Shown: positions 2,111-58,741 of the stretch, one piece after another
Layout of the letters: each line of letters starts with the position of its first letter
Position numbering within the stretch: position 1 is the stretch's first letter
DNA from: Stylophora pistillata
Lineage: Eukaryota
Assembly: GCF_002571385.2 (NCBI RefSeq)
Contig: NW_019218103.1
Span: 145,752 to 209,751, forward strand
Direction of reading: 5' to 3'
Length of the DNA: 64,000 nt
Translations under genes and position numbers: made by a program
Notes under the pieces: generated by a model
What the model was told of the DNA's origin: nothing
The model's database searches: none
What the model saw: only the letters and a program-made list of their open reading frames with translations

Positions 2111-2115
2111 TATGA

Positions 2116-26091: not shown

Positions 26092-26999
26092 TTAAACTTA
26101 AAGTGTCAACAAAGGTACCACCCAAGGAAGTGTCAGCGGGCCGCACTTGTTCAATGTCTTTCTCAGTGATTTAGAGATACACTTGGACAATAAGAGCGTG
26201 CTGGTAAAATATGCAGATGATACAACCATTATCTCGCCTGTGATAGGTGATAATGACAATTCTATCGCACTGATTAATCAGTTTTCCCAGTGGTCTAGAA
26301 GTAATGGTATGTGTAGCAATCCATCTAAGTGCAAGGAAATCATTTTCCGCAAGAAAGGTTGTACAATAGAGTTTCCGATGGTGTCTGGAATACCACAGAC
26401 AAAAGAGCTTACTATTTTAGGGGTAACATTTCAGGAAGACAGTAGGTTCATAACACATATTCGGGAAAAACTAATCAAAGCAAACAAGTGCCTGTTCATT
26501 TTAAGATCTTTAAGGAAAGAAGGGTACAATCAGGCCGAAATAGACCATCTGTTTCTAAATCTGGTTCTACCAAATATATTATACGGGCTGTCCGTATTTG
26601 GCGCTGTAAATTCCGAATTAACAACAATCCAATGTTTCTTAGATCGATGTTATAAGCGCAAGTATACATCCGACCACATTAATGTTTATGAATTGTTAGT
26701 TCAACAGGACACACGTATCTTCAAGAATGTTTTTAATAACACAATACACCCTTTAAGAGCTATAATGCCAAAAAAGAAATCAACCAAGTACAATCTGAGG
26801 AAAGAGACAAGTCACCATCCTAAAATAAACACTGATAGGTTCAAAAACACGTTTGTTAATCGCTTAATTTTTAAACATAATCTAGTCTTATAATTTTTAT
26901 CTTGATTTTCTCTGTAACTTATATATATACCTTCTTTTAATGTTGTAACATAGGATATGTGATTATTTATCTTATGACTTAATAAAGATTCAATTCAAT
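26092..26999 (+). mobile_element. 5'-truncated non-LTR retrotransposon (CR1-group RT C-half) with 9-bp TSD
   Basis: ORF 26147-26893 with KYADDTT and INTDRFKNTF. AATAAA plus (TTCAA)n tail. TCTTTAAAG at 26083-26091 and 27000-27008. Confidence 0.9.
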
Positions 27000-33889: not shown

Positions 33890-36221
33890 GCCGCAAGATG
33901 CACAATAGAGACATATTAAAAATCAAACCTAGCAAGACAAATGATCCTAACGATTCGGCATTATTTAAAAAACAAAGAAATATAGTCAATAAGCAAATAC
34001 GCTCAGCTAAGCAAGTTTATTACCAAAATAGTTTTAATAAGCACACCAGCGACTCCCGAAAGACCTGGCAGACTATAAACGAGCTAACTTCTCGAAAATC
34101 TGGGAAAACGCCAGTGGCGTCACTAATAGTAAACGGATTGACGATAACAAATCCGTTGGAGCTATCAAACGAATTCAATAACTACTTTTCTAACGTTGGT
34201 CCAAAACTTACCAGTGAGATAAGTTGTGATAGTGGTAGCTATCAAAGATATCTTACCGCTACAGATAAACGGTTTAAGCTCCAACCCAAGAGCACGATAT
34301 TCTATGTCAAAATCAATCAGGATTTCGTGCTAATCATTCAACTTTAACAGCTTTGTTGGAAGCGACAGATTCTTGGGCATATAATATTGATAAAGGAAAA
34401 ATCAATGGAGTCATATTTCTAGATTTGTAAAAAGCTTTTGACACTGTTGATCATCAGATCCTTCTATCGAAAGTAAACTTCTACGGTTTCACTCATATTT
34501 GGAAAACCGCATACAGAAATGCTCTGTGAACGGGTCGCTATCCAATAGCTACTAAGGACCTTAAGCAAACCACGACGGCGACGGCAACGGTAACGAGGAC
34601 GTGGAAAAACAAAAGATCTAATCGACAGAACAATAGCTCAGCACGTGCGTTTTAAAACTTATCGTACATTTCTTAGCCGTCCATTGCAAGACAACGACGT
34701 GCAATCATCAAAATTCGCGTCGTCTGCGAACCGAAACCGCGACGGCAAATTATTTAATTTCCATTTCGAACTGAACGCTACTTTTAGGGACCTTAAGCAG
34801 TCAGGACGGCGACGCCAAGGAAGACGTTGATTAAAAAATGAATTTCTAATTTTAATTAGAATTTCGAAAATGGCTGCATGTGTTTACCGTTTCATAAGGC
34901 GCCGCACCTAAACCTCAACATAACGGATAAAAGTAGCGTTCAGTTCGAAATAGAAATTAAATAATTTGCCGTCGCGGTTTCGGTTCGCAGGCGACGCGAA
35001 TTTTGGTGATTGCCCGTCGTTGTCTTGCAATGGACGGCTAAGAAATGTACTAAGTTTTGAAACGCACGTGCTGATCTATTGTTCTGTCTATTAGATCTTT
35101 TGTTTTTCCACGTCCTCGTTGCCGTCGCTGTCGTGGTTTGCTTAAGGTCCCTACTAATTGACATGCGGCGTCCCTCAAGGAACCATCCTCGGCCCATTAT
35201 TGTTCTTATTATACATCAACGATCTTCCAAATTGCTTATTAAATTGTAAACCGAGAATGTACGCTGACGACACACACCTCACATATGCGGGAAGTAATCT
35301 TAAGAATGTTCAGTTTAGTCTGAATGAAGATCTAGCAAACGTTTTCAACTGGCTACAAGCGAACAAACTCACATTGAACATGACCAAAACCAAATTCATG
35401 CTAATAGGGTCGAGGCATAAGTTGAATATTCTCACAGCTTTACCAACAATTGGAATGAACAGTACTCAAGTGAGCCAGGTTACAGCTACAAAATCGCTTG
35501 GTGTAATAATAGACGATAAACTCGATTGACATATTCACATCGAAAAATTAACGAAAAAGATCGCCTCTGGTATCGGAGCCCTAAAGCGAATTAGGCACCT
35601 GATCTCAGCATTAACCTTACATCTCATTTACCAAGCTTTAGTGAAACCTCACTTTGATTACTGTGACATTGTTTGGGGTAGCTGTGGGAAAACGCTACGA
35701 GTCAAACTGCAGAAATTGCAGAATAGAGCAGCCCGTGTGTTGACATTCTCTAACTATGATGCTGATACAACTGCACTACTCGAGTTTTTAGGGTGGAAAA
35801 ATGTTGCACGCCAGCAGGAAATTCATAAAGCCACCATGACGTTTAGATGTCTGCACGGGCTAGCTCCAGAGTATCTGTGTTCAAAGTTTACGTGGCGTAA
35901 CTCTACTTATGACTTCAGGGACTCTGAAAATAAGTTTAATGTTTAATTACCGCGCACTAATTATTACCGAAAAAGTTTTAGCTACAATGGTACCACATTA
36001 TGGAATAGTCTACCATGCGATATAAGGAACACAGAGTCTCTGAGGGTATCTAAACGTTGTATCAATGACATTCTTAAGTCTAACGCACGGCATTCACGGA
36101 AAACAGCTTTTAGTGTCGTAGTATGTTGTTTGAATTTTAAATATCTTAGCTTATGTGATATGCATTTTTAAGGACTGATGAATTGAGCGTATTTAAATAC
36201 AGATTACTACTACTACTACTA
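33890..36221 (+). mobile_element. Degenerate CR1/L2-group LINE, split by a MITE
   Basis: KKQRNIVN..KTWQTINEL, FLDL*KAFDTVDH, CGVPQGTILGPLLF, MYADDT, KLQKLQNRAAR, (TAC)n tail at ~36205-36221. Confidence 0.9.
34553..35153. mobile_element. Composite MITE: partial inverted copy (34553-34784) fused to a full copy (34785-35153)
   Basis: 34553-34784 is the reverse complement of ~34930-35153. TAGGGACCTTAAGCA..TGCTTAAGGTCCCTA termini. Confidence 0.8.
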
Positions 36222-37572: not shown

Positions 37573-38650
37573 CTAACGCTGGGGTACACGTCCACATGAC
37601 CTAATGTCACGTCTTTTCTGTTCGCACACCCTATCACTGCAGCTGCTTAAGAGGTTCGTGGCGGGAGTTTTATCTTCTTACTCTACTCAAGGGTGTAGGA
37701 TGTAGAACTTCCGCGATTCTGTGCACGAGTGCATTTTTAAAGAAAGTGAGGGGAGCATCGTTGATACATGTCATAATGACAAAATTTTGCAGACTACAAT
37801 TATAATTTCACAATTTTTCGTCTAAAGATTAAAGCTGATTAATTAAGTCTGCCCCAGGGCAGTGTGACGATTCGGTTAATAAGTCATGGGTTGTCAATGT
37901 TCGTTCGACAAAAGGATCGAACCTTTATCATGCGCGAAGCCGATCTAAAATGACAGAGACAAGGTTCAATATGATTATATGTTGGCCTGGAGTGTCACGG
38001 CTTCCCTTCTCAGTCTTTCCCTTCTCGCTCGTTTACGCAAGGCTAGAAAGTTAAGAAAGCTCAGTGCAATGAATAAACTTATACATTTAATAAATTTGTG
38101 CCGGTAATGATGGCCTAGACGAGTGATTTCCACTGGTCATTTCCAATCATATCTCAGACGGAAGTGATTCGGTCATGGTTATAGGCCAAGCATTCCGCTT
38201 CCCAAAATGATTAGTCCTTTGTAGCTTAACCTCTAATCCTTAAAATCACGCAAGTTTTAAATAGCTCGGTCGAGTGTACACACGTACATTTCAAATTGAA
38301 GGGAGCACTGGGTATGATTTCGTGAATGATCTACCCAAAGACTAGGTTTTTTTAATCGTCTTATTATTATTTGCGAATCTTAAGCGGGACAATTGTTGTT
38401 TCGATCCAGTAGCACTCTATACAATTCAAAGCTATAAAAACGCGACTGAAATCAGCTTTGATAAAAAAAAGTCACGAATTGCACCGGCAACGTGAATTCG
38501 CAAAACGTGTCGTTGAACTACATTTTCAACGTCATCCTAACAAAGTGCATTGTGCTCGAAAACGTGAGAAATAGTGTGAGCACTTATCATGTTGAATCAG
38601 GCAGTGTGGCTTGCTGTTGAATTGTTTTGCTTGACAATGGACGATTTAAT

Positions 38651-38794
38651 TAGGCCATTTCCGAGTTTTAAGAATGCTTACTTTCAAAATGAGCTTAGGT
38701 GCCAAACTTTCTTTCTCAAAATGAATTTTATGTGCATGAGAATAAGCGCCCAGCCTCCTTTTAAACAGAAGTTTCTGGCATCCCAGAACGGCCT
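38651..38794. mobile_element. Small MITE-like element (duplicate at 42769-42912)
   Basis: taggccatttccgag...cagaacggcct imperfect TIRs. Confidence 0.4.
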
Positions 38795-39091
38795 TTTGAA
38801 ACATAAATTTGAAAGAGGGACCCCCCTCATTATTTTCCAAGTAATCGTTGCCCAGCCTTAGTAATGCATACAGAGAAAGTCCAATGGTACAATTACTTGA
38901 AACCTAGCTAGTGTTAATTACGATGAAGTCAACTTCTGATCAACTTCTGAGTTGGAAATTGCAGCTGAGACTGGATGGAAATTATTTCATTTTTAAGACA
39001 AACCAAATAATGTACTCGGTTAGAAAGTATTTAATTTACAGTGAATTAAGTAAAGTTTCTTTTTCTATTATTATTATTTTCCTGCTTTCAG

Positions 39092-39183
39092 ACGTTACTC
39101 GCAGGCCTTATGAAGCAGATGTGGGGCGATGTGTAGAAACGTGCAACGCGTCTGACACCGTCACCATCAAAGCTCTTCCTGAG
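39092..39183 (+). CDS. Duplicated copy of an internal exon of the cystine-knot repeat gene
   Basis: tttcag|AC..GAG|gtgaga encodes (x)VTRRPYEADVGRCVETCNASDTVTIKALPE; identical to 43210-43301. Confidence 0.6.
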
Positions 39184-40441
39184 GTGAGAATGGTATCTTT
39201 GCGAGCAGGCCCTCGGTTCATTAACGCTGCGACACGAGCGGCGAAGAACCCGGAGACTCGAGCCAGCGAATTAAGCACACCTCCGGAAGCCTGTTGAAAC
39301 TTTTGCAAACCTCTCTCACGCTCGCACGCCGCTTCTAAACCCGCGGGCTTCGCCGCTCGTGTCGCAGTGCTTCAGAGACCCTACACGCTCGCAGGCCTTG
39401 GAAATGGCGGAAGCACAGCGTGCAGTCATGTAATGGCTACGAAATCTAACACATTTCCGAAACCATACTTCACCTTAGCTAATCTGAATTCGAATTTTTC
39501 AGATCATTTTGGACTCGCTTTGAGTTATCCCATACGGACATTAGAGAGGAGCCTAAATCTTCTTTGCGGGAAGTTTCTGGGTAACACGATGAGTGGAAGG
39601 AATTAAGTCTTGTTGCAAAGAACGGATACACCTAACCTGTTCCGAGTTGATCCAGACCTTGTGTTCCATAAAGTGTTATTGATCAAATTCGCCAATTGCC
39701 TCAATGTAGAATGTGTCATCAGTATACTTTTTGACGTTTCTTTTGGCTCAAGGTTCGTCGCTGCATTTTCTAAATGTTACAAGCTCATCGTTGGTAAACA
39801 GATGTAATTTCCTCAGTAATAACACCCGTTACATTGATTCATCTTTTCCACTTTGGCGTTTTTTGTGTTTCCAGACTGACATTTTCTGGTTTATTTCACT
39901 TTTAAATTAATTATAAAAGCCGTAACAGACGACTTAAGACTCGATTGCTTTCTCTATGATCTGCGTATATAAATATTGCATAACTTTTAAAGAGGAAACT
40001 TGTTCTCAGACCCTAACCATTAACACTATGGCTCGAATTATTTTTGAAAATTGCAATAAAAATTTTCCTTAAACGTGTTATTTTAAATAACAGCCTCAAG
40101 GTGCTAAAGAATTCTTTGGCTTCCAGTCAGTGGGGTTCTTTTAGAGTAGGAAGGGGCTTGTCAGACAGAAGGCAGGGCTTCAAAAACCTTACTTATGGCC
40201 AAAATGCAATCCATTCTTCTACCTCATGAATTATTGCCCAGATTTGATAAATACCCTAGACAATTGAAAACCCACATATATGCGATATCTAACAAATAGA
40301 GAAGCCTTGACTGTGCTTTTTTCTGGTGCAAAGCACGCAGGAAGTGCTTAGGGCACGAAAAGAGGAGACAGAAGAGTTTTTTTTAGATAACCTCTCAAAC
40401 GAAACAACCCGAAAAATCAGTATGCAGTGATACATTAATTT

Positions 40442-41143
40442 ATAGGTGTAGCTTAGTGTAGTAGGTGTAGTAAGTGTGGTTTAGTGTAGTTTGGTGTAAT
40501 AGGTATAGTAAGTGTAGTTTAGTGTAGTTAGGTGTAGTAGGTGTAGTTTGGTGTAGTAGGTGTAGTTTGGTGTAGTTTGGTGTAGTAGGTGTAGTAGTTG
40601 TACTTTAATGTAGTCTGGTGTATTAGGTGTAATTTGGTGTAGTTTGGTGTAGTAGGTGTAGTTTGGTGTAGTTTATTATAGTAGGTGGAGTTTGGTGTAG
40701 TAGGTGTACTTTAGTGTAGTTTGGTGTAGTTTGGTGTAGTTTGGTGTAGTAGGTGTAGTAGGAGTAGTTTGTTGTAGTAGGTGGACTATGGTGAAGTAGG
40801 TGTAGTTTGGTGTAGTTTGTTGTAGTAGGTGGAGTTTGGTGTAGTCGGTGTAGTTTGTTATAGAAGGTGGAGTTTGGGGTAGAAGGTGTAGTTTGGTGTA
40901 GTTTGTTGTAGTAGGTGGAGTTTGGTGTAGTAGGTGGAGTTTGGTATAATAGGTGTAGTTTGATGTAGTTTGTTGTAGTAGGTGGAGTTTGGTGTAGTCG
41001 GTGTAGTTTGATGTAGTTTGGTATAGTAGGTGGAGTTTGGTGTTGTAGGTGTAGTTTGGTGTAGGTTGTTATAGTAGGTGTAGTAGAAGTAGTTTGGTGT
41101 AGTAGAAGTAGTTTGGTGTAGTAGGTGTAGTTTGGTGTAGTTT
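40442..41143 (+). repeat. GGTGTAGTTT/GGTGTAGTA 9-10-mer minisatellite (duplicate copy)
   Basis: Direct reading of the sequence. Confidence 0.95.
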
Positions 41144-43209
41144 GGGAGATGACAAAACGCGGAGCCCTACTCCATGGAGTACCCTATGGACTACCTGAAT
41201 AGAGTACCCCTAAAATCATGTATGAGTCAAATAAAATACTTTATGAATATGGTGAATCGTTTAGATGTACATATCCTGATATATTTTGAGCTTGTCAGCT
41301 CTCCGATTGTCGCACTTAGATGTAGTACACGAATTGACCGCCATCTTGAAATTAAGATTAAACTGCTGACCGTTTCCAACGGAAAGCTTTAATGTAGGTA
41401 GGATCCATGAACGTTATCGTTAATAGGTCGACTACCATCTATTTTCATATGATCTTCAAGAGGTCAAATGGAGGGACAACCTTCATTCTGCAACGGGTTT
41501 TACGTCTTCCAAAATACCTTATGTGTGGCGTCTGTAAGAAGTTTGGCGCTCCATCTAGTAACGCATGGCCTCGCATGGGTTTCTTAAATGTGCGAAACGA
41601 TGAGGATACAAGCTTATATTTGTTTAAAAAGGTAATCTATATCTTTAAACTGAGGGTCTCCTCCCCCATCTATTCGTAGCGCAATAAAATTGAGGTATAT
41701 AAACAAACCAAAAAAAAAAAACAGTGACAGGTCGGCAAATAAATCCGACTGGGGTTGTTGATCTGGGAAATGCAGTAAGCTTAGATATTTTACCTCGTGC
41801 AGAAATCGAAACAGTGGGTTTTGTTCATTACATGGAGTTGTTTGTCTTCTCGTCAAAGGACTCATTACACAGCGGTAAAAACAAAATGGAGTAACCAGTA
41901 AGACTGAGAGCCCTAGTCAACTGTTCCCCCAAAAACTGGATTGTATCGAACTGTGACATTCGGAGAGCTGGTAAGCTCAATATATTTTAGGATANAATAA
42001 GTCATGGGTTGTCAATGTTCGTTCGACAAAAGGATCGAACCTTTATCATGCGCGAAGCCGATCTAAAATGACAGAGACAAGGTTCAATATGATTATATGT
42101 TGGCCTGGAGTGTCACGGCTTCCCTTCTCAGTCTTTCCCTTCTCGCTCGTTTACGCAAGGCTAGAAAGTTAAGAAAGCTCAGTGCAATGAATAAACTTAT
42201 ACATTTAATAAATTTGTGCCGGTAATGATGGCCTAGACGAGTGATTTCCACTGGTCATTTCCAATCATATCTCAGACGGAAGTGATTCGGTCATGGTTAT
42301 AGGCCAAGCATTCCGCTTCCCAAAATGATTAGTCCTTTGTAGCTTAACCTCTAATCCTTAAAATCACGCAAGTTTTAAATAGCTCGGTCGAGTGTACACA
42401 CGTACATTTCAAATTGAAGGGAGCACTGGGTATGATTTCGTGAATGATCTACCCAAAGACTAGGTTTTTTTAATCGTCTTATTATTATTTGCGAATCTTA
42501 AGCGGGACAATTGTTGTTTCGATCCAGTAGCACTCTATACAATTCAAAGCTATAAAAACGCGACTGAAATCAGCTTTGATAAAAAAAAGTCACGAATTGC
42601 ACCGGCAACGTGAATTCGCAAAACGTGTCGTTGAACTACATTTTCAACGTCATCCTAACAAAGTGCATTGTGCTCGAAAACGTGAGAAATAGTGTGAGCA
42701 CTTATCATGTTGAATCAGGCAGTGTGGCTTGCTGTTGAATTGTTTTGCTTGACAATGGACGATTTAATTAGGCCATTTCCGAGTTTTAAGAATGCTTACT
42801 TTCAAAATGAGCTTAGGTGCCAAACTTTCTTTCTCAAAATGAATTTTATGTGCATGAGAATAAGCGCCCAGCCTCCTTTTAAACAGAAGTTTCTGGCATC
42901 CCAGAACGGCCTTTTGAAACATAAATTTGAAAGAGGGACCCCCCTCATTATTTTCCAAGTAATCGTTGCCCAGCCTTAGTAATGCATACAGAGAAAGTCC
43001 AATGGTACAATTACTTGAAACCTAGCTAGTGTTAATTACGATGAAGTCAACTTCTGATCAACTTCTGAGTTGGAAATTGCAGCTGAGACTGGATGGAAAT
43101 TATTTCATTTTTAAGACAAACCAAATAATGTACTCGGTTAGAAAGTATTTAATTTACAGTGAATTAAGTAAAGTTTCTTTTTCTATTATTATTATTTTCC
43201 TGCTTTCAG

Positions 43210-46200
43210 ACGTTACTCGCAGGCCTTATGAAGCAGATGTGGGGCGATGTGTAGAAACGTGCAACGCGTCTGACACCGTCACCATCAAAGCTCTTCCTGA
43301 GGTGAGAATGGTATCTTTGCGAGCAGGCCCTCGGTTCATTAACGCTGCGACACGAGCGGCGAAGAACCCGGAGACTCGAGCCAGCGAATTAAGCACACCT
43401 CCGGAAGCCTGTTGAAACTTTTGCAAACCTCTCTCACGCTCGCACGCCGCTTCTAAACCCGCGGGCTTCGCCGCTCGTGTCGCAGTGCTTCAGAGACCCT
43501 ACACGCTCGCAGGCCTTGGAAATGGCGGAAGCACAGCGTGCAGTCATGTAATGGCTACGAAATCTAACACATTTCCGAAACCATACTTCACCTTAGCTAA
43601 TCTGAATTCGAATTTTTCAGATCATTTTGGACTCGCTTTGAGTTATCCCATACGGACATTAGAGAGGAGCCTAAATCTTCTTTGCGGGAAGTTTCTGGGT
43701 AACACGATGAGTGGAAGGAATTAAGTCTTGTTGCAAAGAACGGATACACCTAACCTGTTCCGAGTTGATCCAGACCTTGTGTTCCATAAAGTGTTATTGA
43801 TCAAATTCGCCAATTGCCTCAATGTAGAATGTGTCATCAGTATACTTTTTGACGTTTCTTTTGGCTCAAGGTTCGTCGCTGCATTTTCTAAATGTTACAA
43901 GCTCATCGTTGGTAAACAGATGTAATTTCCTCAGTAATAACACCCGTTACATTGATTCATCTTTTCCACTTTGGCGTTTTTTGTGTTTCCAGACTGACAT
44001 TTTCTGGTTTATTTCACTTTTAAATTAATTATAAAAGCCGTAACAGACGACTTAAGACTCGATTGCTTTCTCTATGATCTGCGTATATAAATATTGCATA
44101 ACTTTTAAAGAGGAAACTTGTTCTCAGACCCTAACCATTAACACTATGGCTCGAATTATTTTTGAAAATTGCAATAAAAATTTTCCTTAAACGTGTTATT
44201 TTAAATAACAGCCTCAAGGTGCTAAAGAATTCTTTGGCTTCCAGTCAGTGGGGTTCTTTTAGAGTAGGAAGGGGCTTGTCAGACAGAAGGCAGGGCTTCA
44301 AAAACCTTACTTATGGCCAAAATGCAATCCATTCTTCTACCTCATGAATTATTGCCCAGATTTGATAAATACCCTAGACAATTGAAAACCCACATATATG
44401 CGATATCTAACAAATAGAGAAGCCTTGACTGTGCTTTTTTCTGGTGCAAAGCACGCAGGAAGTGCTTAGGGCACGAAAAGAGGAGACAGAAGAGTTTTTT
44501 TTAGATAACCTCTCAAACGAAACAACCCGAAAAATCAGTATGCAGTGATACATTAATTTATAGGTGTAGCTTAGTGTAGTAGGTGTAGTAAGTGTGGTTT
44601 AGTGTAGTTTGGTGTAATAGGTATAGTAAGTGTAGTTTAGTGTAGTTAGGTGTAGTAGGTGTAGTTTGGTGTAGTAGGTGTAGTTTGGTGTAGTTTGGTG
44701 TAGTAGGTGTAGTAGTTGTACTTTAATGTAGTCTGGTGTATTAGGTGTAATTTGGTGTAGTTTGGTGTAGTAGGTGTAGTTTGGTGTAGTAGTTGTACTT
44801 TAATGTAGTCTGGTGTATTAGGTGTAATTTGGTGTAGTTTGGTGTAGTAGGTGTAGTTTGGTGTAGTTTATTATAGTAGGTGGAGTTTGGTGTAGTAGGT
44901 GTACTTTAGTGTAGTTTGGTGTAGTTTGGTGTAGTTTGGTGTAGTAGGTGTAGTAGGAGTAGTTTGTTGTAGTAGGTGGACTATGGTGAAGTAGGTGTAG
45001 TTTGGTGTAGTTTGTTGTAGTAGGTGGAGTTTGGTGTAGTCGGTGTAGTTTGTTATAGAAGGTGGAGTTTGGGGTAGAAGGTGTAGTTTGGTGTAGTTTG
45101 TTGTAGTAGGTGGAGTTTGGTGTAGTAGGTGGAGTTTGGTATAATAGGTGTAGTTTGATGTAGTTTGTTGTAGTAGGTGGAGTTTGGTGTAGTCGGTGTA
45201 GTTTGATGTAGTTTGGTATAGTAGGTGGAGTTTGGTGTTGTAGGTGTAGTTTGGTGTAGGTTGTTATAGTAGGTGTAGTAGAAGTAGTTTGGTGTAGTAG
45301 AAGTAGTTTGGTGTAGTAGGTGTAGTTTGGTGTAGTTTGGGAGATGACAAAACGCGGAGCCCTACTCCATGGAGTACCCTATGGACTACCTGAATAGAGT
45401 ACCCCTAAAATCATGTATGAGTCAAATAAAATACTTTATGAATATGGTGAATCGTTTAGATGTACATATCCTGATATATTTTGAGCTTGTCAGCTCTCCG
45501 ATTGTCGCACTTAGATGTAGTACACGAATTGACCGCCATCTTGAAATTAAGATTAAACTGCTGACCGTTTCCAACGGAAAGCTTTAATGTAGGTAGGATC
45601 CATGAACGTTATCGTTAATAGGTCGACTACCATCTATTTTCATATGATCTTCAAGAGGTCAAATGGAGGGACAACCTTCATTCTGCAACGGGTTTTACGT
45701 CTTCCAAAATACCTTATGTGTGGCGTCTGTAAGAAGTTTGGCGCTCCATCTAGTAACGCATGGCCTCGCATGGGTTTCTTAAATGTGCGAAACGATGAGG
45801 ATACAAGCTTATATTTGTTTAAAAAGGTAATCTATATCTTTAAACTGAGGGTCTCCTCCCCCATCTATTCGTAGCGCAATAAAATTGAGGTATATAAACA
45901 AACCAAAAAAAAAAAACAGTGACAGGTCGGCAAATAAATCCGACTGGGGTTGTTGATCTGGGAAATGCAGTAAGCTTAGATATTTTACCTCGTGCAGAAA
46001 TCGAAACAGTGGGTTTTGTTCATTACATGGAGTTGTTTGTCTTCTCGTCAAAGGACTCATTACACAGCGGTAAAAACAAAATGGAGTAACCAGTAAGACT
46101 GAGAGCCCTAGTCAACTGTTCCCCCAAAAACTGGATTGTATCGAACTGTGACATTCGGAGAGCTGGTAAGCTCAATATATTTTAGGATATGTACATCTAA

Positions 46201-49200
46201 ACGATTCACCATGTTCATAAAATATTTTATTGGACCAATACATGACTTTTATGGGTACTCCATTAAGGTACTCCATAGGGTACTCCATGGAGTAGGGCTC
46301 CGCGTTTTGCCATCTCCCGTGTAGTTTGGTGTAGTAGGTGTAATTTAGTGTAGTAAATATAGTTTGGTGTAGTGTAATGTAGTAGGTATAGTTTGGTGTA
46401 CTTTGGTGTAGTTTATGTGTAGTAGGTGTATTTTAGTGTAGTAAGTATAGTTTTGTGTAGTGTAATGTAGTAGGTGTAGTTTGGTGTAGTTTGGTGTAGT
46501 TTGTTGTAGTGGGTGTAGTAGGTGGAGTCTGGTGTGTAAGTGTAGTTAAGTGTAGTAGATGTCGTTTGGTGTGGTAGGGATTGTTCCGTATATTGGGTGT
46601 AGTGTGGTGTAGTTTGGTGTAGTGGGTGTAGTAGAAGTAGTTTGGTGCAGTAGGTGTATTTTAGTGTAGTTTGGTGTGGCAGGCGTAGTTCAGTTTAGTT
46701 TGGTGTGGTAGGTGTAGTAGGTGGAGTAGGTGGAGTTTGGTGTAGTAAGTATAATTTAGTGTAGTTTGGTGTATTTGGTGTATTTTGGTGCAGTAGGTGT
46801 AGTAGGTGTAGTTTGGTGTAGTAGGTGTGTTTTAGTGTAGTAAGTATAGTTTTGTGTAGTGTAATGTAGTAGGTGTAGTTTGGCGTAGTGGGTGTAGTAG
46901 GTGTAGTTAAGTGTAGTAGATGCCGTTTGGTGTGGTAGGGATTGTTCCGTATATGAGGTGTAGTGTGGTGTAGTTTGGTGTAGTAGGTGTACTAAGAGTA
47001 GTTTGGTGCAATAGGTGTATTTTAGTGTAGTTTGGTGTGGCAGGCGTAGTTCAGTTTAGTTTGGTGTGGTAGGTGTAGTAGGAGTAGTTTGGTGTAGTAG
47101 GTGTAACTTAGTATAGTTTGGTGTAGTAGGTGTAGTTTAGTGTATTAATTTGGATATATCAACAAAGTTGAAATGGTAAATTGGCCACTGTAACGATTAC
47201 AAAAGCTGACGTTTCGAGCGTTAGCCCTTCGTCAGAGCGAAAGTAGTTTAATGTAGTTTGGTGTAGTAGGTGTAGTTTGGTGTAGTAGTTGTAGTTTGGT
47301 GTAGTTGCTGTAGCAGGTGTTGTTTGGTGTAGCATGTTTACTTTAGTGTGATACGTGTAGTTTGGTGTAGTAGGGGTTGTTGTGTATATGAGGTGTAGTT
47401 TGGTGTTGTAGGTGTAGTTTGGTGTAGTAGGTGTAGTTTAGTGTAGTTTGGTGTAGTAGGTGTAGTTTGGTGTAGTAGGTGTAGTTTGGTGTAGTAGTTG
47501 TAGTTTGGTGTAGCAGTTGTAGTAGTTGTTGTTTGGTGTGGCATGTTTAGTTTAGTGTAATAGGTGTAGTTTGGTGTATTAGGGGTTGTTCTGTATATTA
47601 GGTGTAGTTTGGTGTAGTAGGTGTGGTTTGGTGTAGTAGGTGTAGTTTGATGTAGTAGGTGTAATGTGGTGTAGTTTATTGCAGTAGGTGTATATTGGTG
47701 TGGTAGGTGTAGTCTGGTGTAGTAGGTGTAGTTTGGTGTAGTTGGTGTATTTTGGTGCAGTAGGTGTAGTAGGTGTAGTAGGTGCGGTTTGGCGTAGTTG
47801 ATGTAGTAGGTGTAGTTTCGTGTAATTTGGTGTGGTAGATATAGTTTGGTGTGTTAGGTGTACTTCGGTGTAATTTAGTGTGGTAGCTGTAGTTTGGTAT
47901 AGTAGGTGTTTTTTAATGTATTAGGTGTAGTTTGGTGTGGTTTGGTGTAGTAGGTGTAGCTTAATGTAGTAGGTGTAGTTTGGTGTAGTTTGGTGTATTA
48001 GGTGTTGTAGATATAGTTTGGCGTAATAGGCGTAGTTTGGTGTACTTTTGTGTAGTTTGGTGTAGAAGGGGTAGTTTAACATAGTTTTATGTAGTAGGTG
48101 TAGTTTTATGTAGTAGGTGTAGTTTTATGTAGTAGGTGTAGTTTGATGTACTAGGGGTAGTTTGGTGTAGTAGGTGTAATTTGGTGTAGTAATCAAACAG
48201 CCACTACACCTACTACACCAAAATACACCTACTACACCTACTAAACCAAACTATGACTGCTACATGAAACTACACTTATTACACTCAACTACCACTAAAC
48301 CACCAATCTACACCTACTTCACCAAGCTTCACCAAACTACACTAAACGACACTAACTACACCTACTACACCTACTACACCTACTACACCAAACTACACTA
48401 AACTACACTTACTACACCTACTACAACTACTACATTAAACTACACCAAACTACACCTACTAGATCAAACTACACTTACTACACCTGCTACACCTACTGCA
48501 TCTTCTACAGTTACTACACCAAACTACACTTACTACATCTACTGCACCTACTACACCAAACTACACCTACTACATCTTCTACACCTACAACACCAAAGTA
48601 CACCAAACTACACCTACGACATCTTCTACACCTACAACACCAAAGTACACTAAACTACACCTACTACACTTTATTCTAGATTGTGTTACATAACAAGCGT
48701 TGGTTTTTTTTCACTTAGATAGCGTAGAACCTTGTTTTATATTCGTGATGGTAATAATGGATCTATTAACATGTGTGACCATGAGTGTAGATGGAGCGGC
48801 AAGATCTAAGGAGCCGCAAAAGGTTTACGAGTTAGTCGAAAAAGCTGTTCTCTCGTCAACTAAACTAAGTATATACCCAAGGTTGTTAAACATATTTGTA
48901 AACCTATTAGACAGTCGGAAGAGTGATGTGTTTTTCAAAATTTTATAAGTTATCTATTGTGTTGGTGGAACAAGAGTTGAAGATTGTATTGCATTCTACT
49001 TTAGGCCGTCCAAGTCGAAGCTTAGTTATAAGAAAGTTCCTGTTCGTGTCAACAAACTAAACGAGAGTTTGCCAATAATGCGCAAAAAAGTAGGTTTAAC
49101 GCGAAAGACGAGTCATAGTCTTGGTGTTACTTGGGCATCGTCGTTGTTTTTTAAATGCAGGTGTAAAAGAGAAATTAATAATAGCTAGAACTGAACACCG

Positions 49201-52022
49201 GTCGGACTCTTTGTTTAAGTATGAAAAGGCTGGCGATGAGAAAATTAGAGAAGTTTCCACAGTATTAGGACTAAGAACTAGTACTAGTACATCTGAAGTT
49301 GCTATTACTAAACAGAAAGAGGAGTCAAGTTGTTTGGAGAGTTCTGATTTTCACGAATATGTGACTGCAAGTTCACGTAATAGCTGTTTTCTTTCCAACT
49401 GTTCTGTGAAAATCAGGGTTAATTATATCAAATAAATCTCAGGTCATTTTTGGAAATGTTGTTAACGGTGTATTAATGATTGAAAAATGCTCATTAAAAT
49501 GCAAGTGTTTGATCTGAGATCTAAACTATGTTTCAACTCAGATCAAAACCCTTAATTAAGATTTGCATCTGAGTGTTCATTGGGTATCAAGGTTCGTGCA
49601 TGAGACCCAAATACGCATTATTTGTTGGTTGCTGCACTCATGAATTATTAATGAATTAGAGAAACGAATTTCAAAAAATTTTTTGAAATGAAAGGTATCC
49701 GACCTCTTTCAGCATATTTCAAATGCTAAAAAATATCTCTTTCATAAAAGAACTCAGCGCAGTTTCCATGCCACAGAGTGGCACAAAAGGCTTTCTTAGC
49801 ACTAAAAGTGAGTTAAACCTACTTAATAAACCTTTAAAAAAAATCTGATTTGATCATAGAAGATGTCCTATGGTTCTTCTTCCTGTAACCCAACTGAGCT
49901 GACCAGCAGAAGTTATCCCCTCATTGGTGAGTCAAAGTACAAGACCGCCATTTCCAAGTGTGGCTATCAACATACCTCTGGCGGCTGCAGTCGCCAAGCT
50001 TTGTTCAAATCCTTCTTTAACGGAACATCATACAGTCGTCGTCATGATACAGGTGTCTGCCTTGGCTCTTGTGGAAACAGTGGACATGCCTGCAAAGCCA
50101 TTGACAGCGTAATGATTGGCATAAAAGGGCCAAATGGTAGGATATTTATATAGATATAAAGTGTGAACATCTCACATTGCTTAAGGTCATGCAGGTACAC
50201 TTGAATTGATTACTTGTTTCTAAATAGGAGAAGGGGAACTAACTGTTCGTGTTATTAAGAAGTGTGGTTGTGTGAACCCAATTTGCCATCGCGTTGCGTT
50301 TCGTGAAGTTTTCAAGAGGAAGACGGGTAAAGCGTGGATCCAAGAGGTATGTAATAAAGAGAATAAGCAAAGAAATGTCACAAGAAAGTGACTGATAACA
50401 GAGATCATAATTTAAAGATCACTGATGACAATTGCAATAATTGTGAGAAAAATAAATTATGTCCCTTGTGCGACGTTGATTCTAAAGCATTTTTCAGTAA
50501 CGTGACGTGCCAAATATAATTTAGAAACGACAGTCGTGTCTATAAGTGTACGTGAGTGGCCATAGTCACTCGTGAATACTCGTGTGTACTTTGAATCACA
50601 ACCAGAAACCGTTGCCACAACACAATTTAAGAATGTGCAATAGTTCAGTAATTGATTTATTCATTTACCCGATCTTTTAAAAATGGTTGCCGAATATTTT
50701 TATTTAAACCAGCGCCTTAACACTTTGCAAAAATGCAATAGTCAAGCGGAGTCTTCCGCAAAGCGTCATATCATTCGACGATCGGATGATAAACCAAGCA
50801 GCTGAAAAAATTACGAAGTAAATAGAGCTAGAAATAAATGAAATAGTAATGAATAAGAAAAGGACGAAATAAAAACATGGATGGTTGAACATGTAACTTT
50901 CTTATATTGTACTGATACATCATAAAGAAAAAATGATGACAATACGCAACCCTTGAGAGTTTGATGATTAAGAAGCTGTACCGAAAAATATTTACTCCTC
51001 TTAAATGAAAAACCATTATTAAAGGTTAAATAAACAAAACATACTGAGTAACATAAAAAAAGAATGAAAGATTTATGCAAGAGAATATGATTCTCTTGAG
51101 CTATGTAAATACGCGCAAACAGAAAAAAACGATTCAAAATTTTAAGCATACGTGTAAATACATTGACATGTAAAGATCGACAGATATTTCCCTCTTCCAG
51201 TATTAAGTTTTTTTTTTCAGGAAAAAGACGTTGGAATGTGCGTCGGTACTGGTTGCCCGAGGGACTGTATTCGCTGTTTCTTCGGGTAAGTCGTTGCATT
51301 CCATGCAATTTATATACTGAGGCAATTTTATGAAGTTCGTTGACGGAGTCTGTGGCAGCGGTCGAAAACCATTTGAAAGAAGAATTAATAATGCTATGAT
51401 AGGCAGAATGATACTAGCATTTTGATTGGTTCTTACTTTTGATCTGTTGGAAGACAGACGCATAAATGACGTCACCATTGTTGCGGCTATTCCTCAACAA
51501 GGTTTTATGTCAGTCTGTTCCGTTCCGTTCTTCATTTTTTTGTATGTCACGTAGACCACAATCCTTCAGTAGTAATTTTTATTTTTGGCCCCCCTTTTAC
51601 GCACGTGGTGAAGCGCTTGTAAATAATTTAGGTACGTGAAACTGTTTCTTTTCTTTCGTTTACCGCCTTTCATCATGTGGTTTTTATGGCTCCCTGAGTC
51701 TCGTAATTTATGATGAAAGAGCGACCGGATGGTTTTGTAAACATTGGAATTCTTCGCCGTCATTAAATTCGTTGGTTTAATGAGCTGTTCTGTTGTTATT
51801 CGACATCGACGCCGCTATATGTGTCCGACCCGGACAACCATTAACCTGCCAACTCATTCATTTATCATTTTATTTCTATACAGGAACAAGTATTGTGACG
51901 ATAATTGCCTGGTTTATCGCGAGAGAACCTGTATCGCTACCAACTACACTACAGAATATGTTCACACTGGCGATCACGAAGAAAAGAAGATCTACACTAT
52001 AACTGAATGTGGATGCAAGTAG
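43210..52022 (+). CDS. Spliced gene for a Cys-rich protein with three tandem cystine-knot-like modules (5' end unresolved)
   Basis: Exons 43210-43301, 49860-50136, 50228-50346, 51221-51285, 51884-52022 are all GT-AG with compatible phases (0,1,0,2) and give one open frame. Repeated motif D[VT]GxCx[GE]xC..C..I..CGC, ending ITECGCK*. Confidence 0.85.
45339..46318. mobile_element. Mutator(MULE)-like MITE, 980 bp, long TIRs, 9-bp flanking repeat (truncated duplicate at 41144-41994)
   Basis: GGGAGATGACAAAACGCGGAGCCCTACTCCATGGAGTACCCTATGGA...TCCATAGGGTACTCCATGGAGTAGGGCTCCGCGTTTTGCCATCTCCC, flanked by GTGTAGTTT on both sides. Confidence 0.82.
47205..47238 (-). ncRNA. Penelope-type minimal type I hammerhead ribozyme motif within a ~90-bp Penelope-like fragment (~47150-47241)
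   Basis: Minus strand: GCT-CTGACGA-A-GGGC-TAAC-GCTC-GAAAC-GTC-AGC has an intact core, stems I and II, and palindromic ACGT in place of stem III. Confidence 0.7.
48860..49435 (+). pseudogene. Crypton-like tyrosine recombinase remnant (DUF3504-type C-terminus)
   Basis: Frameshifted AFYFRPSK..VPVRVNKLN..KVGLTRKTSHSL..FLNAGVKEKLIIARTEHRSDSLFKYEK matches the HSLR..GHRS...Y recombinase motifs. Confidence 0.72.
49860..50136 (+). CDS. Cystine-knot repeat gene, exon
   Basis: catag|KMSYGSSSCNPTELTSRSYPLIGESKYKTAISKCGYQHTSGGCSRQALFKSFFNGTSYSRRHDTGVCLGSCGNSGHACKAIDSVMIGIKGPN(G)|gtagg. Confidence 0.85.
50228..50346 (+). CDS. Cystine-knot repeat gene, exon
   Basis: aatag|(G)EGELTVRVIKKCGCVNPICHRVAFREVFKRKTGKAWIQE|gtatg. 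Confidence 0.85.
51221..51285 (+). CDS. Cystine-knot repeat gene, exon
   Basis: ttttcag|EKDVGMCVGTGCPRDCIRCFF(G)|gtaag. Confidence 0.85.
51884..52022 (+). CDS. Cystine-knot repeat gene, terminal exon
   Basis: tacag|(G)NKYCDDNCLVYRERTCIATNYTTEYVHTGDHEEKKIYTITECGCK*. Confidence 0.85.
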
Positions 52023-53334
52023 AGAAGAAGAAGGGGAGGTCACTATTTCATGATATCCCTCGGATTACGATGTTGACGATAACTTCCCAAAAATAGTTTG
52101 AGTAGGGTAAAGGTAGTGCGATGCAAATACCTTGTTCCTTCTATTTGTTTTGACGTTTTTGTTTTGTTTTCTTAGTTTTTGGTTCTTTTTCAGTTGTATC
52201 TCTATACATGAAAATAAAACCGCCAGTAATGTAGAAGAGACAGAAATTCTCCCTTTTTTCTTCTTTTTGATAGAGTTAGTACATTTCATTTAATTGAACA
52301 AAGATTTTAATCCAGTAAAATTCACTACTTCTAATGAAAAAACACTACGTTATATCTAGAGACTGTGACGTATCCACTGTCCTCTTGTCGCAACTATTTT
52401 CAAATACACAAATTTTAAAAAAAATCCAAAACGGTATTAAAAAAAAACAAAACAAAAGGAACAATTGAGTTATTTGCATCGCACTATTTTAGTGAAAGTC
52501 TTGCTTATACAGATTGAAATCAGATTTTTTTTATTATATTACCTTCTTTAGGAGAGTGGTTTTAAGGAAAGCAACAACGTGTTTTTCTGACGAATCAACT
52601 TTTCGAAGTTTAGGCTTCAGGCTTTTTTATGTTGGTTAGTTAGTTTGTTTTTGTCAGCCTTTGTTTTCTTTTACACCAAAATATTACAGTACAAATCGGA
52701 TGTAATAGATGAACTAATGGATTTTTTAGGTGCGCAAAAAAAGTCATCTTTTCCACTGTATGTTTAAATCTCTTTTTATTTCTCACCTCTGCTCCTACTA
52801 TTCCTTCTTATTTCGTTTATGTATTTGTCTTCTTTTGGTTACCTTTTTTTCTTGTGGCAAAAGTCTCTACCGACTGCATTTTGCATCAGTTGTTTCTATG
52901 TTTAATATGGAGAGGAAGTAGTAAAAATTAGTTTTGACTTGTCTCGGGTCTTATCTGTGGAACATTTTAAGAGTATTGGTACACTTTAGCGTTTTTTGAC
53001 TTTCAACTTTTTCCATAGTCAGTAGTTTGTAGGTCTCAAGCAAATGAGTTTTCAAATCATCCCAGGATTTTTTAGGAGTTTGTTGGTGTTTTTTCAGTCA
53101 GCTTCATTGTAAAGAATATTGTACTGAACTTGGTTTGAAAGTTTAAGTAAGTAGTGTCGAGACTGTGTTAACTGATTACGCTGCAGGTTAAATAAAGCAA
53201 GACAATGAACATTCAAAAGTTGTAATGCGTTAGTGATGTCTATCTACAAGCATTTATATGATAAGCTAGCGCTGAATCCTACACGAATTTTGACTGGTTC
53301 TTACATATGAGAGTAGGAATGGGGAGGAGACCTC

Positions 53335-53804: not shown

Positions 53805-55442
53805 AGGTTCGATTCCTCATGAGGACTCAGAATGTTTTCTTTGTCTCACACTCGTGACCAGGCGCAAAACATCTTTCTACATTTCTTTACTGAGCTCAAA
53901 ACTTACCATCTTTCATATTCTTTACAAAACATGACGCTTTCGACATTGTCGATCCTAGCGGCACGCATGCGCATATGAGCAAAGCCTTCGATAGCGTCAA
54001 TCACGACACGTTAATTTTAAAATTGCAAGATGTCGGAATTTCCAGTGACGCTCTCCAATGGTTTCGTAGTTACCTAAGCAACAGGACACAAATAGTACGA
54101 ATCCATTCAACGCTATCTGAGCCTTTGTCTGTGACCAACGGCGTCCCTCAAGGAAGTATCTTAGGCCCACTACTATTTAGCATATATACGAACGATCTTC
54201 CATCGATCCCACAGAAATGCAGCACTCAGAGTTATGTAGATGATACGAAACTCATCACTTCCTTCGAACTTAAAGACAACCTGGATGCAATTGCTGATTT
54301 GGAAGACGACTTGTTTAAAATAGGAGAATGGTGTTCCAACAACCAATTGTTACTTAACCCTGGCAAAACCAAGCTGATGATATTTGGCAGCAGGCAGATG
54401 CGTGCAAAATTGCAATTTCGCTCCCTTTCCTTTATGGGTGAGGACATCGTCCCCGCAGACACCGCCAAAGACCTTGGTGTGATTTTGGATTCTAATTTAA
54501 CTTACGATGAACACATAATTAAGACCGCTTCCTCGTGCATGTCCCGCCTCGGCCAAATAAACCGTGTCAAGCATGTTTTCGACAAACGTACACTTTTGAT
54601 GATTATTAATTCCTTAGTTTTCAGCAGGTTATTTTATTGTTCCAATGTTTGGTCAAATACCTCAAAATGTAATGTTAACAAGTTACAGGCGGTGCAGAAC
54701 TTCGCATGCCGCATTGTTAGCGGTGCGCGTAAATTTGACCACGTTACACCAATTCGCAAGGAACTAAATTGGCTTTCAGTTCAAAGCCAGCTTTACTACC
54801 GGAACGCTACTATGGCCTTTAGATGCATGACTGGTCAGGCCCCAGAATACCTCTCATCAAAATTCATAAAGCGAGCCGAGGTTAGTCGACGTAGCACCAG
54901 AAATTCGCAGCTTTTGCAAATTCCATTCTTTAGAACAGCTAGCGGTCAGAGAACATTTTTCTATAGAACTGTAAACTTATGGAATTCTTTGGATAATTCC
55001 TGTAAACTGTGCAACTCCGTTAATGTTTTTAAAAAACGTTTAAGTACCAAATTACTCAAAGAGTTGTAATTTTACATATATATTTGTATACTTTTATTTT
55101 TCTTTTAGAACATTCAGATTTTAAAACATTTTTAATTGTAAATTAAAACAATTTTGTACATTTAAAACATTTTTAATTGTAATAGGAATATTTTTATAAC
55201 ATTGTCTTTGAAAAGCCTCCTTGGGGAAAGTCAATAAAGTATGTATGTATGTATGTATGCACGCAGGAAGCGTGTCAAATATGAACTTCGTAATGGGCCT
55301 TGCTCACCATAGAGTCTCTGTTACTCAGTGGTAGAGCATCAGAGCACAGAATCCAAAGGTCTGAGGTTCGATTCCTCATGAAGACTCAGAATTTGTTCTT
55401 TCTCCCACGCTCGTGACTAGAGACAAACAAACATCTTTCTAT
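53805..55442 (+). mobile_element. tRNA-derived terminally redundant repeat with 8-bp TSD, interrupted by a LINE
   Basis: ATCATCTA at 53797-53804 and 55443-55450. A-box TTACTCAGTGGTAGAGCA and B-box GGTTCGATTCC at ~55320-55375. The start (aggttcgattcctcatga..) is repeated at the end. Confidence 0.8.
53968..55258 (+). mobile_element. 5'-truncated CR1/L2-group LINE with uninterrupted RT C-half and 7-bp TSD
   Basis: ORF 53975-55069 (SKAFDSVNH, GVPQGSILGP, YVDDT, KLQAVQNFACR). AATAAA plus (TATG)n tail. GCACGCA at 53961-53967 and 55259-55265. Confidence 0.93.
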
Positions 55443-56634: not shown

Positions 56635-58741
56635 TTTATTTGCCTTATTTTAACAATTAAAAATAGTTAATTGCAGCGATAACAGTTAGAAGGCGAGGAG
56701 ACCCAAGAAGCCACCAGGCTTATGGGAGAGCCACCTCACTTACAATAATAAATTAAGTAAAGAAAAAGTGCTGCGAATGTGCGGCTTGGCCAATTCAGTG
56801 ATTATTTAAGTAAAAACTCTTGCAATTTCGCTTTAAAGCTGAGAAAGTTTGACGAACGAGTGACTGAAATAGGGAGAGAGTTCCAAATTTTAGGACCTTG
56901 GTAGAGAATTGTAAACTGCTTGACATTTGTACGGCACAAATGCGTTCGATAATTACTGGCTGTTCTGGTACCATAGTTGTGAATTTGGCTATTCCTTACA
57001 AAAAGATCGAGAAGCAATGGGGGCAATAAGTTATTTTTGAAATAAAACATAAATTTAGCGATTTCAAACGTATTGACTTGGAAAATATCTAAAATTCCTA
57101 GTTTGGAGAATAAAGGGGCAGAGTGGTCTCGATAGTCTGAGTTGGTGATAGCCCGCACAGCTCGCTTTTGCAAATAATAAATTCTATTTAAGTTAGATAC
57201 GTATGTGGACGACCAGACGGAGTTACAATAAACGATATAAGGATAAACTAAGGTGTAATACAAATAGTCCTTCTCGGTGATTTTAACTTTGACTACATCT
57301 CACCAAATGCGACAACAAAACATTTCCAGCGTACCATGAATCTTCTAAATTTAAAGAAATTAATCAACGAGCCCACAAGGATCACCCAAAACTCAAGAAC
57401 TTTAATCGATTGCAAATAGTAAATTCTATTTAAGTTAGATACGTATGTGGACGACCAGACGGAGTTACAATAAACGATATAAGGATAAACTAAGGTGTAA
57501 TACAAAGTGAGCTTGGTTGCAGAGGATAGGGAAAAGCGAGACCTAAATATAATACCTATTGATTTAGCGATTTGTTTACATACATAGTTGATATGGTATT
57601 TCCAGGTGAGATGATTGTCAATATAGACCCCAAGGAATTTAGTTACTTTACCTTGTTGTAGAGGTTTACCTCCAAAGGAGAGAGAAATGCTGAGTTAAAT
57701 TTCTTCTGTCTGGGTTTAAAAACTATATAGTTGGTTTTCTTTACACTAACTGAAAGCTTGTTACATTTTAGCCAAACGTCAATGTTTTGGAGTTCATCAT
57801 TAAGTATGGATTCTAAGCAATTTAGATTTGAGTGAGAATTAAAGATACTGGTGTCATTAGCGAAAAGTAGAGGGTCTGATAATTCAGAGGCATTAGGAAG
57901 GTCATTAATGTATAGAACAAACAATAGTGGGCCTAAAATCGAACCTTGAGGGACACCACCCTTGATGGTTTGCATCGGAGAGCAAGCTTGATTGAATTGG
58001 ACAAATTTCTGGCGGAAAGAAAAGTAGCTTTTAAACCACTGCATAGCCACGTCACGGATACCATGGTGCTCCAATTTGGCAAACAAGATTTGGTGCTCGA
58101 GAGTGTTGAATGCTTTGGAAAGATCTAGGAAAACACCCACCGTTGTTTGGTGTTGGTCGATTGCAGATGCAAGTTTGTTTACCAAATGAATTAGCGCGTG
58201 CGATGTTGAGTGATTTTTCCGAAATCCGAACTGACAGCGGTAAAGTATATCGTGTTTTTCGGCAAATTCTACTAAGCGATTGTATATGACTTTTTCGAAA
58301 AATTTGGAAAAATTTGACAACAAAGAAATGGGTCTGTAGTTTACAAAAAAGCTAGGATCCTCTGCCTTGAAAATGGGAATGATTTTAGCGATTTTAAGTT
58401 TGTCCGGGAAAATACCTTTTAGTAAAGATGTATTGATGATATCTGCCAAAGGGGCGGCAGAAATAAGGTGAAATGAATAGTTAATGACATGCATTGGGAT
58501 ACTGTCAGAGCCAGGAGCTTTCTTTGAAGCGAACATGCTACAAATACTCTCCAGTTCACTAGTTGTGGTGGGCTTTAAGTTAATGGAGAGATGTTTGTTG
58601 TAACCGAGATAAGAACGAAAAGAAGGATTCACGGTAGCTAGGTTGGGACCAATGTTTGTAAAGTATTTGCAGAATCTGTCAGCGATCTCCATTGAATCCG
58701 TTAATGTTCTACCTTTAGATTTAAATGATGTGGGAAGAGAT
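56602..58741 (-). mobile_element. 5'-truncated CR1/L2-group LINE (frameshifted)
   Basis: ORFs 57643-58692 (NYRPISLL, FLDLSKAF, GVPQGSILGP, FANDT) and 56802-57263 (LQKRAVR, YQGPKIWNSLP); (ATG)n tail at 56602-56633. Confidence 0.92.
57265..57409 (+). mobile_element. Fragment of a LINE apurinic endonuclease domain inserted in opposite orientation
   Basis: Translates to IVLLGDFNFDY..LINEPTRITQNSRTLID; flanked by a 97-bp direct duplication. Confidence 0.8.

Follow-up and report, generated by a model that had tools for sequence, protein, structure and literature searches.

A spliced and transcribed gene of the coral Stylophora pistillata encodes a putative three-knot member of the Pinhead family

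Does a locus of the coral Stylophora pistillata, in which a preliminary description made from the DNA letters had seen five exons coding for three tandem cystine-knot modules, hold a genuine gene, and does its product stand outside every named family? The locus lies on contig NW_019218103.1 (hereafter C319), within a stretch of 64,000 nucleotides (C319:145752-209751, "the window"), and it was followed up against the S. pistillata assembly (398 Mb, 5513 contigs). Our best joint explanation, which we consider highly probable, is that of an expressed seven-exon gene for a secreted, three-knot protein of the Pinhead (Pnhd) family, a divergent coral paralogue with a recent second copy on another contig, C34.

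A seven-exon gene and its transcript

The five exons first proposed are each preceded by an AG acceptor and followed by a GT donor, with the last one ending in TAG, and the introns between them have phases 0, 1, 0 and 2, so that a single frame is open throughout. The evidence for the junctions comes from Logan public RNA-assembly contigs of two runs, i.e., assembled sequence and not raw reads. These contigs, L014 (SRR13022815) and L015 (SRR10968396), are 1.77 kb each and carry an open reading frame (ORF) of 271 residues, P0181. Aligned to the plus strand of the window, this complementary DNA (cDNA) falls into seven blocks of 98-100% identity with borders exactly at the proposed junctions (14497-14611, 14902-14959, 43209-43301 or equally 39091-39183, 49858-50137, 50222-50347, 51219-51286, and 51883-52928). 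Since RNA-derived contigs match across them, all four junctions of the five-exon model are confirmed; its completeness is not, as two 5' exons (14497-14610 and 14903-14959) and a 3' untranslated region (UTR) reaching to at least 52928 had to be added. The gene as assembled extends from 14497 to 52928 (+), starting ~29 kb upstream of the exon previously taken as the first, and its coding exon lengths total 816 nt, that is, 271 codons and a stop. Full-length analyses used P0181, the transcript ORF, which differs by 2 residues from the window translation.

The 5' exons were located by tblastn with a Pocillopora orthologue, P0002, and then confirmed by the cDNA contigs. Exon 1 (14497-14610, +) comprises the 5' UTR from the first cDNA base, the ATG at 14544 and a predicted signal peptide (22 codons plus 1 base), with a GT donor at 14611 and 98% identity to L014/L015. 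Exon 2 (14903-14959, +; AG at 14901-14902, GT at 14960-14961) encodes the start of module 1 (G-R-K-K-H-C-S-C-Y-R...T-I-G-S) and supplies the first cysteines of this module, which were absent from the five-exon model. Exon 3 (43210-43301, +), the first exon of that model, encodes D-V-G-R-C-V-E-T-C and the NAS sequon, and its splice sites are kept in the C34 paralogue. The end of module 1 (C-N-P-T-E-L...K-C-G-Y) and most of module 2 (C-S-R...D-T-G-V-C-L-G-S-C...G-P-N-G) are encoded by exon 4 (49860-50136, +), and the end of module 2 (K-C-G-C) together with the start of module 3 (C-H-R...) by exon 5 (50228-50346, +). Exon 6 (51221-51285, +), 100% identical to both the cDNA and C34, contributes the D-V-G-M-C-V-G-T-G-C of module 3, which is completed in exon 7 (51884-52928, +) by ...E-C-G-C-K, a stop codon ending at 52022 and the 3' UTR to at least 52928.

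The 3' UTR of the cDNA is 98.3% identical to the window locus versus 82% to the C34 copy, indicating that the transcript derives from the window locus and not from C34. Both splicing and transcription are thus shown for the window gene. When exon 4 was used in a word search, the one match was a genomic ORF from Tara coral metagenomes, and among the database search matches there was no NCBI Stylophora protein from this locus, although a further paralogue, on contig C6, is annotated. It is therefore plausible that the locus is unannotated, as had been proposed, and missing from the public Stylophora protein set.

Three modules, their family and their predicted fold

The N-terminus of P0181 is hydrophobic and modelled as a helix at residues 3-20 (putative signal peptide), in agreement with the secreted type of protein initially suggested. 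It is followed by three modules (residues ~26-113, 114-183, and 184-271) of the general pattern C-x-R ... D-V/T-G-x-C-x-x-x(x)-C ... C ... C-x-C, and no prodomain or RxxR site is visible in the 271-residue sequence. All motifs quoted beforehand are present in the window, as are the NAS, NGT, and NYT sequons. The description of three knot modules needs to be divided: modules 2 and 3 have the canonical C...C-x-G-x-C...C...C-x-C spacing, with a one-residue insertion (C-V-G-T-G-C) and extra cysteines in module 3, whereas module 1 is noncanonical, with a C-V-E-T-C devoid of Gly and a final C-G-Y instead of C-x-C. Homology nevertheless holds for all three. When a 58-member family alignment was cut by module, the profiles aligned pairwise with hhalign probabilities of 97.9%, 97.6%, and 98.4% (E 4e-13 to 4e-15), and the internal triplication is thus real.

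Whether these modules belong to a named family was addressed with a profile made of window exon 4, its C34 copy, the Tara ORF and the C6 paralogue. A whole-library hidden Markov model search with this profile returned 118 cluster representatives (50% identity), mostly of 220-420 residues and many with 2-4 repeat matches. The best of them, P0002, comes from Pocillopora damicornis (LOC113666280; 270 residues, uncharacterised), and the search with P0002 led to the transcript ORF P0181. The sources looked up among the representatives were metazoan throughout, save for P0108, a lower-ranked and spurious match to a bacterial inverse autotransporter. They include the cnidarians Acropora, Porites, Oculina, Pocillopora, and one sea anemone, the sponges Sycon and Ephydatia, and, among bilaterians, nemerteans, a brachiopod, a barnacle, an ostracod, an isopod, a shrimp, a termite, a springtail, echinoderms, amphioxus, Styela, and one fish.

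Two representatives bring in the name. P0038 is the "pinhead-like protein precursor" of Saccoglossus kowalevskii (exon-4 profile E 3.5e-9), and P0049, from Arapaima (LOC111847599; E 2.3e-7), is 50-59% identical to pnhd/Pinhead of gar, coelacanth, bichir, and dozens of teleosts, including zebrafish im:7138239. Over 232 columns, the coral clade aligned with a set of ten vertebrate Pinheads at an hhalign probability of 98.1% (E 6.6e-14), and P0181 matched gar Pinhead end to end (residues 1-271; BLASTP E 1e-9). In a 14-sequence alignment its three modules are collinear with those of 13 family members, with common landmarks in the initial C-(C)-x-R, the D-V-G-x-C ahead of each knot, the C-x-P of module 1, the G-T-x-Y-E and G-P-N-G of module 2, the C-Y/H-R opening module 3, and the C-terminal C-x-C. 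The preliminary description had recognised no named family, a claim overturned by this full-length match to a characterised one, the very outcome that it had named as a refutation. Sequence comparison identifies the predicted protein as a full-length homologue in the Pinhead family, and the gene belongs to a family already named and does not found a new one.

The coral protein resembles the Pinheads of Xenopus, zebrafish (im:7138239), Ciona, and Saccoglossus in its predicted signal peptide, three collinear cystine-knot-like modules, size range (270-340 residues) and lack of a prodomain, as well as in the D-V-G-x-C ahead of each knot, the module-2 G-P-N-G and the C-terminal C-x-C. Unlike them, to which it is 21-29% identical, it has lost three typical cysteines and gained three, is without their long module-1 linker, comes from a paralogue clade confined to corals, and is encoded beside neither admp nor any TGF-beta gene. 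As side observations, Pocillopora and Branchiostoma members bear the automatic UniProt label "CTCK domain-containing protein", and the teleost Pinheads P0264 and P0310 carry a precomputed Pfam TGF_beta (PF00019) match that other fish pnhd do not have, a hint that Pinhead modules have a sequence similarity, if a borderline one, to TGF-beta domains.

The fold was approached by prediction. In cystine-knot growth factors, C-x-G-x-C and C-x-C build the ring of a three-disulfide knot flanked by two long beta-hairpins. The AlphaFold2 model of P0181, with the family alignment as input, is all-beta with long hairpins (mean predicted local distance difference test score 89.1, predicted template modelling score 0.77). 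The top rows of Foldseek, which had been suggested as a check of the cystine knot, are all cystine-knot proteins, with DAN, CTCK, glycoprotein-hormone, and TGF-beta knots represented (activin, TGF-beta, AMH, BMP9, GDF8, Gremlin-2, VEGF-B, FSH, NBL1, and Norrin; E ~0.1-0.7, probability up to 0.98). In an independent VIA-align scan of 48,161 chains, cystine-knot proteins took 32 of the 38 top rows, led by Gremlin-1 (Z 6.8, the maximum), NBL1 (6.6), Caenorhabditis elegans GPA2/GPB5 (6.5), Norrin (6.4), VWF CTCK (6.0), and sclerostin (5.6), with artemin, GDNF, FSH-beta, PDGF, VEGF, and TGF-beta2 among the others; nearly all of these matches fall on module 3 (residues ~180-271), and module 1 gave weak ones to NGF and PTTH (Z 2.7-2.8). 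Altogether, the model predicts a fold of the cystine-knot type, and we infer that the protein is secreted and folded into three knots. Elsewhere, the ESM Atlas queried with exon 4 yielded weak CTCK, DAN, and vitellogenin leads (0.76-0.85, below 0.9), and a PDB-sequence profile search matched no cystine-knot chain and gave a C2H2 zinc-finger match that was discarded as spurious.

Set against other knot families, the protein is closest in predicted structure to the DAN antagonists, secreted cystine-knot proteins that bind BMP ligands, with Gremlin-1, NBL1, and sclerostin as the best matches of module 3 (Z 6.8, 6.6, and 5.6); it differs from them in the absence of a Pfam DAN/Cys_knot match, and the structural alignments show a sequence identity of 14-17%. 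Each DAN chain carries a single knot, and the proteins form dimers. With the CTCK domains of VWF, Norrin, and mucins and with glycoprotein-hormone subunits, it shares the C...CxGxC...C...CxC spacing in modules 2 and 3 (Z 5-6.5), but it is a small protein of three tandem knots with no other domains, and its module 1 has neither the Gly nor the last Cys. The predicted fold also likens it to TGF-beta/BMP mature domains (Foldseek probability 0.9-0.98 to activin, AMH, and BMP9), as do the C-G-C at its C-terminus and a stretch, C-x-P-T-E-L, that recalls BMPs, whereas the PF00019 match, the prodomain, the RxxR site, and the wrist helix are absent and there are three modules instead of one.

Within the family, the window protein is 81% identical to its Pocillopora orthologue and 57-58% to two Oculina proteins. 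In a quick maximum-likelihood tree of 67 members, with supports from the Shimodaira-Hasegawa-like approximate likelihood ratio test (SH-aLRT), these sequences group together (SH-aLRT 99), and the paralogue clade has been seen so far in Stylophora, Pocillopora, and Oculina. This coral clade nests in a 30-row group (SH-aLRT 97) of cnidarian and sponge sequences, with Styela too, apart from the group containing Saccoglossus, amphioxus, and fish. Neither the tree nor the number of family loci in the genome, four, points to one-to-one orthology with chordate pinhead; because of this placement and these four loci, the window gene is a paralogue within the Pinhead family.

Several observations weigh against our assignment of the gene to Pinhead and to its mode of action. 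The structural Z-scores are middling (at most 6.8), albeit in a uniform list, with module 3 alone well tested, and no relevant Pfam match was obtained with the five exon peptides or nine full-length family members, even at E up to 1-10, be it PF00019, PF03045, or PF00007. The coral clade sits on a long stem of 1.49 substitutions per site, lacks three cysteines (aligned to S75, Y108, and T170) found in 56-81% of the other members, and adds three peculiar to it (C28, C220, and C230), with 22 cysteines in the mature protein compared to a typical 23. The published mechanisms of Pinhead, antagonist versus ligand, conflict with each other. Finally, a study in zebrafish reports a pinhead gene directly upstream of admp in genomes from arthropods to vertebrates, and its absence from birds and mammals (PMC6989304), and this tandem is absent at the window gene: none of the 26 matches of a genome-wide PF00019 scan is on C319, C34, or C6, and the remainder of the window contains only retroelement ORFs.

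The other family loci, the duplicated exon 3 and the surrounding repeats

The four Pinhead-family loci of S. pistillata are on C319 (the window gene), C34, C6, which encodes the Stylophora proteins XP_022788735.1 and PFX34165.1, and C413. The C34 copy (~863200-874000, -; L008/L010) contains exons 3-7 within more than 20 kb of syntenic sequence and keeps their splice sites, reading frame, stop codon, and 20 cysteines without exception. Exons are 91-100% identical between the two loci, and introns 82-89%; over the concatenated exons 3-7, the ratio of nonsynonymous to synonymous divergence (dN/dS) is 0.43 with dS at 0.073, in support of a window gene that would be under purifying constraint. Exons 1 and 2 of the C34 copy were not found within 21 kb upstream, and tblastx of the window versus the C34 upstream region disclosed no further conserved coding exons. 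A ~2.3-kb unplaced contig holds, at C3300:259-782 (L020/L021), a diverged exon 1 (91% in nucleotides) with intron 1 and exon 2 (75%), and this fragment may represent the 5' end that the C34 paralogue lacks.

The existence of this second copy raises the question of whether the window locus is instead a decaying duplicate, a pseudogene next to a functional C34 gene. Besides the second copy itself, such a view could draw on intron 2, which is huge and repeat-rich, and on exon 3, which is duplicated in the assembly: an identical copy (39092-39183, +) lies inside a block of ~4.1 kb, 37878-41994, that repeats 41996-46189. The two blocks are exact except inside a 19-bp satellite, where their length differs, and they meet at a single N, position 41995, which is their exact joint. 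Exon 3 is present once in the cDNA, the block is present once in the C34 paralogue, and the frame would be lost if both copies of this 92-nt exon were used. Most likely, the duplicated block represents overlapping contig ends that were scaffolded unmerged, an assembly artefact; the true gene span would hence be ~34 kb rather than 38.4 kb, with an intron 2 shorter by ~4.1 kb. With the exon duplicate coinciding with a gap in this way, with no stops or frameshifts in the window gene, and with an intact 271-codon transcript that matches the window locus and not C34 in its 3' UTR (98.3% versus 82%), we judge a pseudogene extremely improbable and retain an expressed gene.

As assembled, intron 2 measures ~28 kb and contains a tandem array, fragments of long interspersed nuclear elements (LINEs), the 19-bp satellite and an element with terminal inverted repeats. 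The array is made of units of ~1-1.5 kb (65-80% alike), at 15900-24100 and 30600-32100, and occupies much of the intron; it includes tandem repeats of 118-119 bp (16909-17129 and 21038-21371), and relatives of its units are found upstream of the C34 paralogue too. The satellite, with a unit close to GGTGTAGTTTGGTGTAGTA, spans 40443-41145, 44561-45340, and 46319-48191, ~3.5 kb in total in the intron before exon 4, where an inverted satellite block of ~470 bp (48203-48669) directly adjoins it to form a large imperfect inverted repeat. Within the satellite, an element of ~1 kb with terminal inverted repeats of ~40 bp (45333-46320; truncated copy at 41138-41994) looks like a nonautonomous DNA transposon. 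Retroelement remains occur elsewhere in the window, at 879-6400 (+), 9953-11394 (-), 26147-26893, 33640-35946, 53975-55069, and 56802-58692 (-), and comprise a Gypsy-like gag-pol element, with ORFs for protease, reverse transcriptase, and integrase, as well as several fragments of LINE reverse transcriptases. The remainder of the 64-kb window shows no other evident host gene.

The fourth locus, on C413 (~190500-201000, -; L016-L018), is the orthologue of P. damicornis LOC113670981, with 72-87% amino acid identity per exon. It has an in-frame stop at the expected first Cys of the module-2 C-G-C (V-I-Q-S-*-G-C-E-R-K-C-Y-R), which could reflect a pseudogene, a nonsense allele, or a sequencing error. 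This gene lies ~3 kb upstream, on the same strand, of a TGF-beta-superfamily ORF (C413:186681-187439, -; L016:6682-7440) that encodes an RKRR site and a mature domain with nine cysteines. The identification of this ORF as ADMP was rejected: among its closest solved relatives, TGF-beta2, -3, and -1 score E ~1e-43 versus 1e-18 for BMP6, so that the neighbour resembles TGF-beta sensu stricto and not ADMP. Just past the ORF, on the opposite strand, are degenerate pinhead-like exon fragments with stops. The C413 pair could mean, though we hold this less likely than not, that a tandem of a Pinhead gene and a TGF-beta-superfamily gene is older and more flexible than the pinhead-admp pair.

A candidate extracellular regulator and the age of the family

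The preliminary description had offered the roles of a ligand mimic, an antagonist, or a matrix component. In Xenopus, Pnhd is a secreted protein with multiple cystine-knot domains whose structure is far from that of BMPs and which furin does not process; it binds Admp and inhibits the ventralising, Smad1-activating effect of this ligand (PMC8188501). Zebrafish Pinhead is described as a secreted, ventralising, BMP-like ligand that buffers dorsoventral patterning together with Admp (PMC6989304). Judging from homology, an antagonist or ligand-mimic role for the coral protein would agree with this published work. We propose that the window protein could act outside the cell on signalling of the TGF-beta superfamily. 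Its likeliest course would be to bind a BMP/ADMP-class ligand, as Pinhead does in Xenopus and Ciona, and to alter the access of this ligand to its receptors; for this particular paralogue, we give such a role about an even chance.

The zebrafish findings, together with the presence of activin, BMP9, and GDF8 among the best Foldseek rows, would also fit a protein that is itself the ligand, engaging BMP-type receptors and activating Smad1/5 without sequestering another ligand. Such a protein would be at odds with the Xenopus homologue, which acts through Admp binding and is neither furin-processed nor BMP-like in structure (PMC8188501), and with the coral protein itself, which has no RxxR site and whose best VIA matches are the antagonists Gremlin-1 and NBL1. 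Moreover, its even number of cysteines (22) would leave no obvious free cysteine for a covalent dimer. We therefore regard action as a ligand in its own right as unlikely, and less likely than the binding of a BMP/ADMP-class ligand.

A role peculiar to corals and unconnected with BMP/ADMP control, such as that of an immune effector or of a cystine-knot protein of structural, mucus, or skeletal-matrix type, would account for the long branch and rewired cysteine pattern, the recent duplication (C319 and C34) among four family loci, and the want of a linked TGF-beta gene, and CTCK modules do occur in mucins and VWF. On the other hand, the complete three-module Pinhead architecture is retained, including D-V-G-x-C and G-P-N-G, and the protein is free of the repeats, low-complexity regions, and acidic tracts typical of matrix proteins. 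Since this paralogue has diverged and has no ligand gene linked to it, we grant this role a small but real share of probability, and continue to favour the binding of a BMP/ADMP-class ligand.

Our study provides a transcript-supported gene model for a locus apparently absent from the public Stylophora protein set. What had seemed an unrecognised multiknot family proves to be already named, and the surprise is modest in this respect; what interest remains concerns the family, with its pre-bilaterian age and coral expansion, and the one paralogue that is paired with a TGF-beta-like gene. In a 2024 review that covers BMP signalling in cnidarians and bilaterians, Pinhead figures solely among the regulators of chordates (PMC11226491), and none of the papers in the library that we searched dealt with cnidarian or sponge Pinhead. 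The homologues reported here, with four loci in S. pistillata, extend the family to corals and sponges, beyond the published range "from arthropods to vertebrates".

To our knowledge, Pinhead has been studied so far only in chordate axis patterning. With homologues in calcareous sponges, demosponges, and anthozoans, we tentatively suggest, as a scenario that is possible rather than probable, that the family predates Bilateria and that, in the robust-coral lineage, one branch rewired its disulfides, duplicated recently, lost any linkage to a TGF-beta-family gene and may have assumed an extracellular role of its own in corals. In cnidarians, the directive axis is patterned by BMP signals, and links have been drawn between TGF-beta signalling and both symbiosis and immunity in corals. 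The coral Pinhead paralogues therefore constitute testable candidate extracellular regulators.

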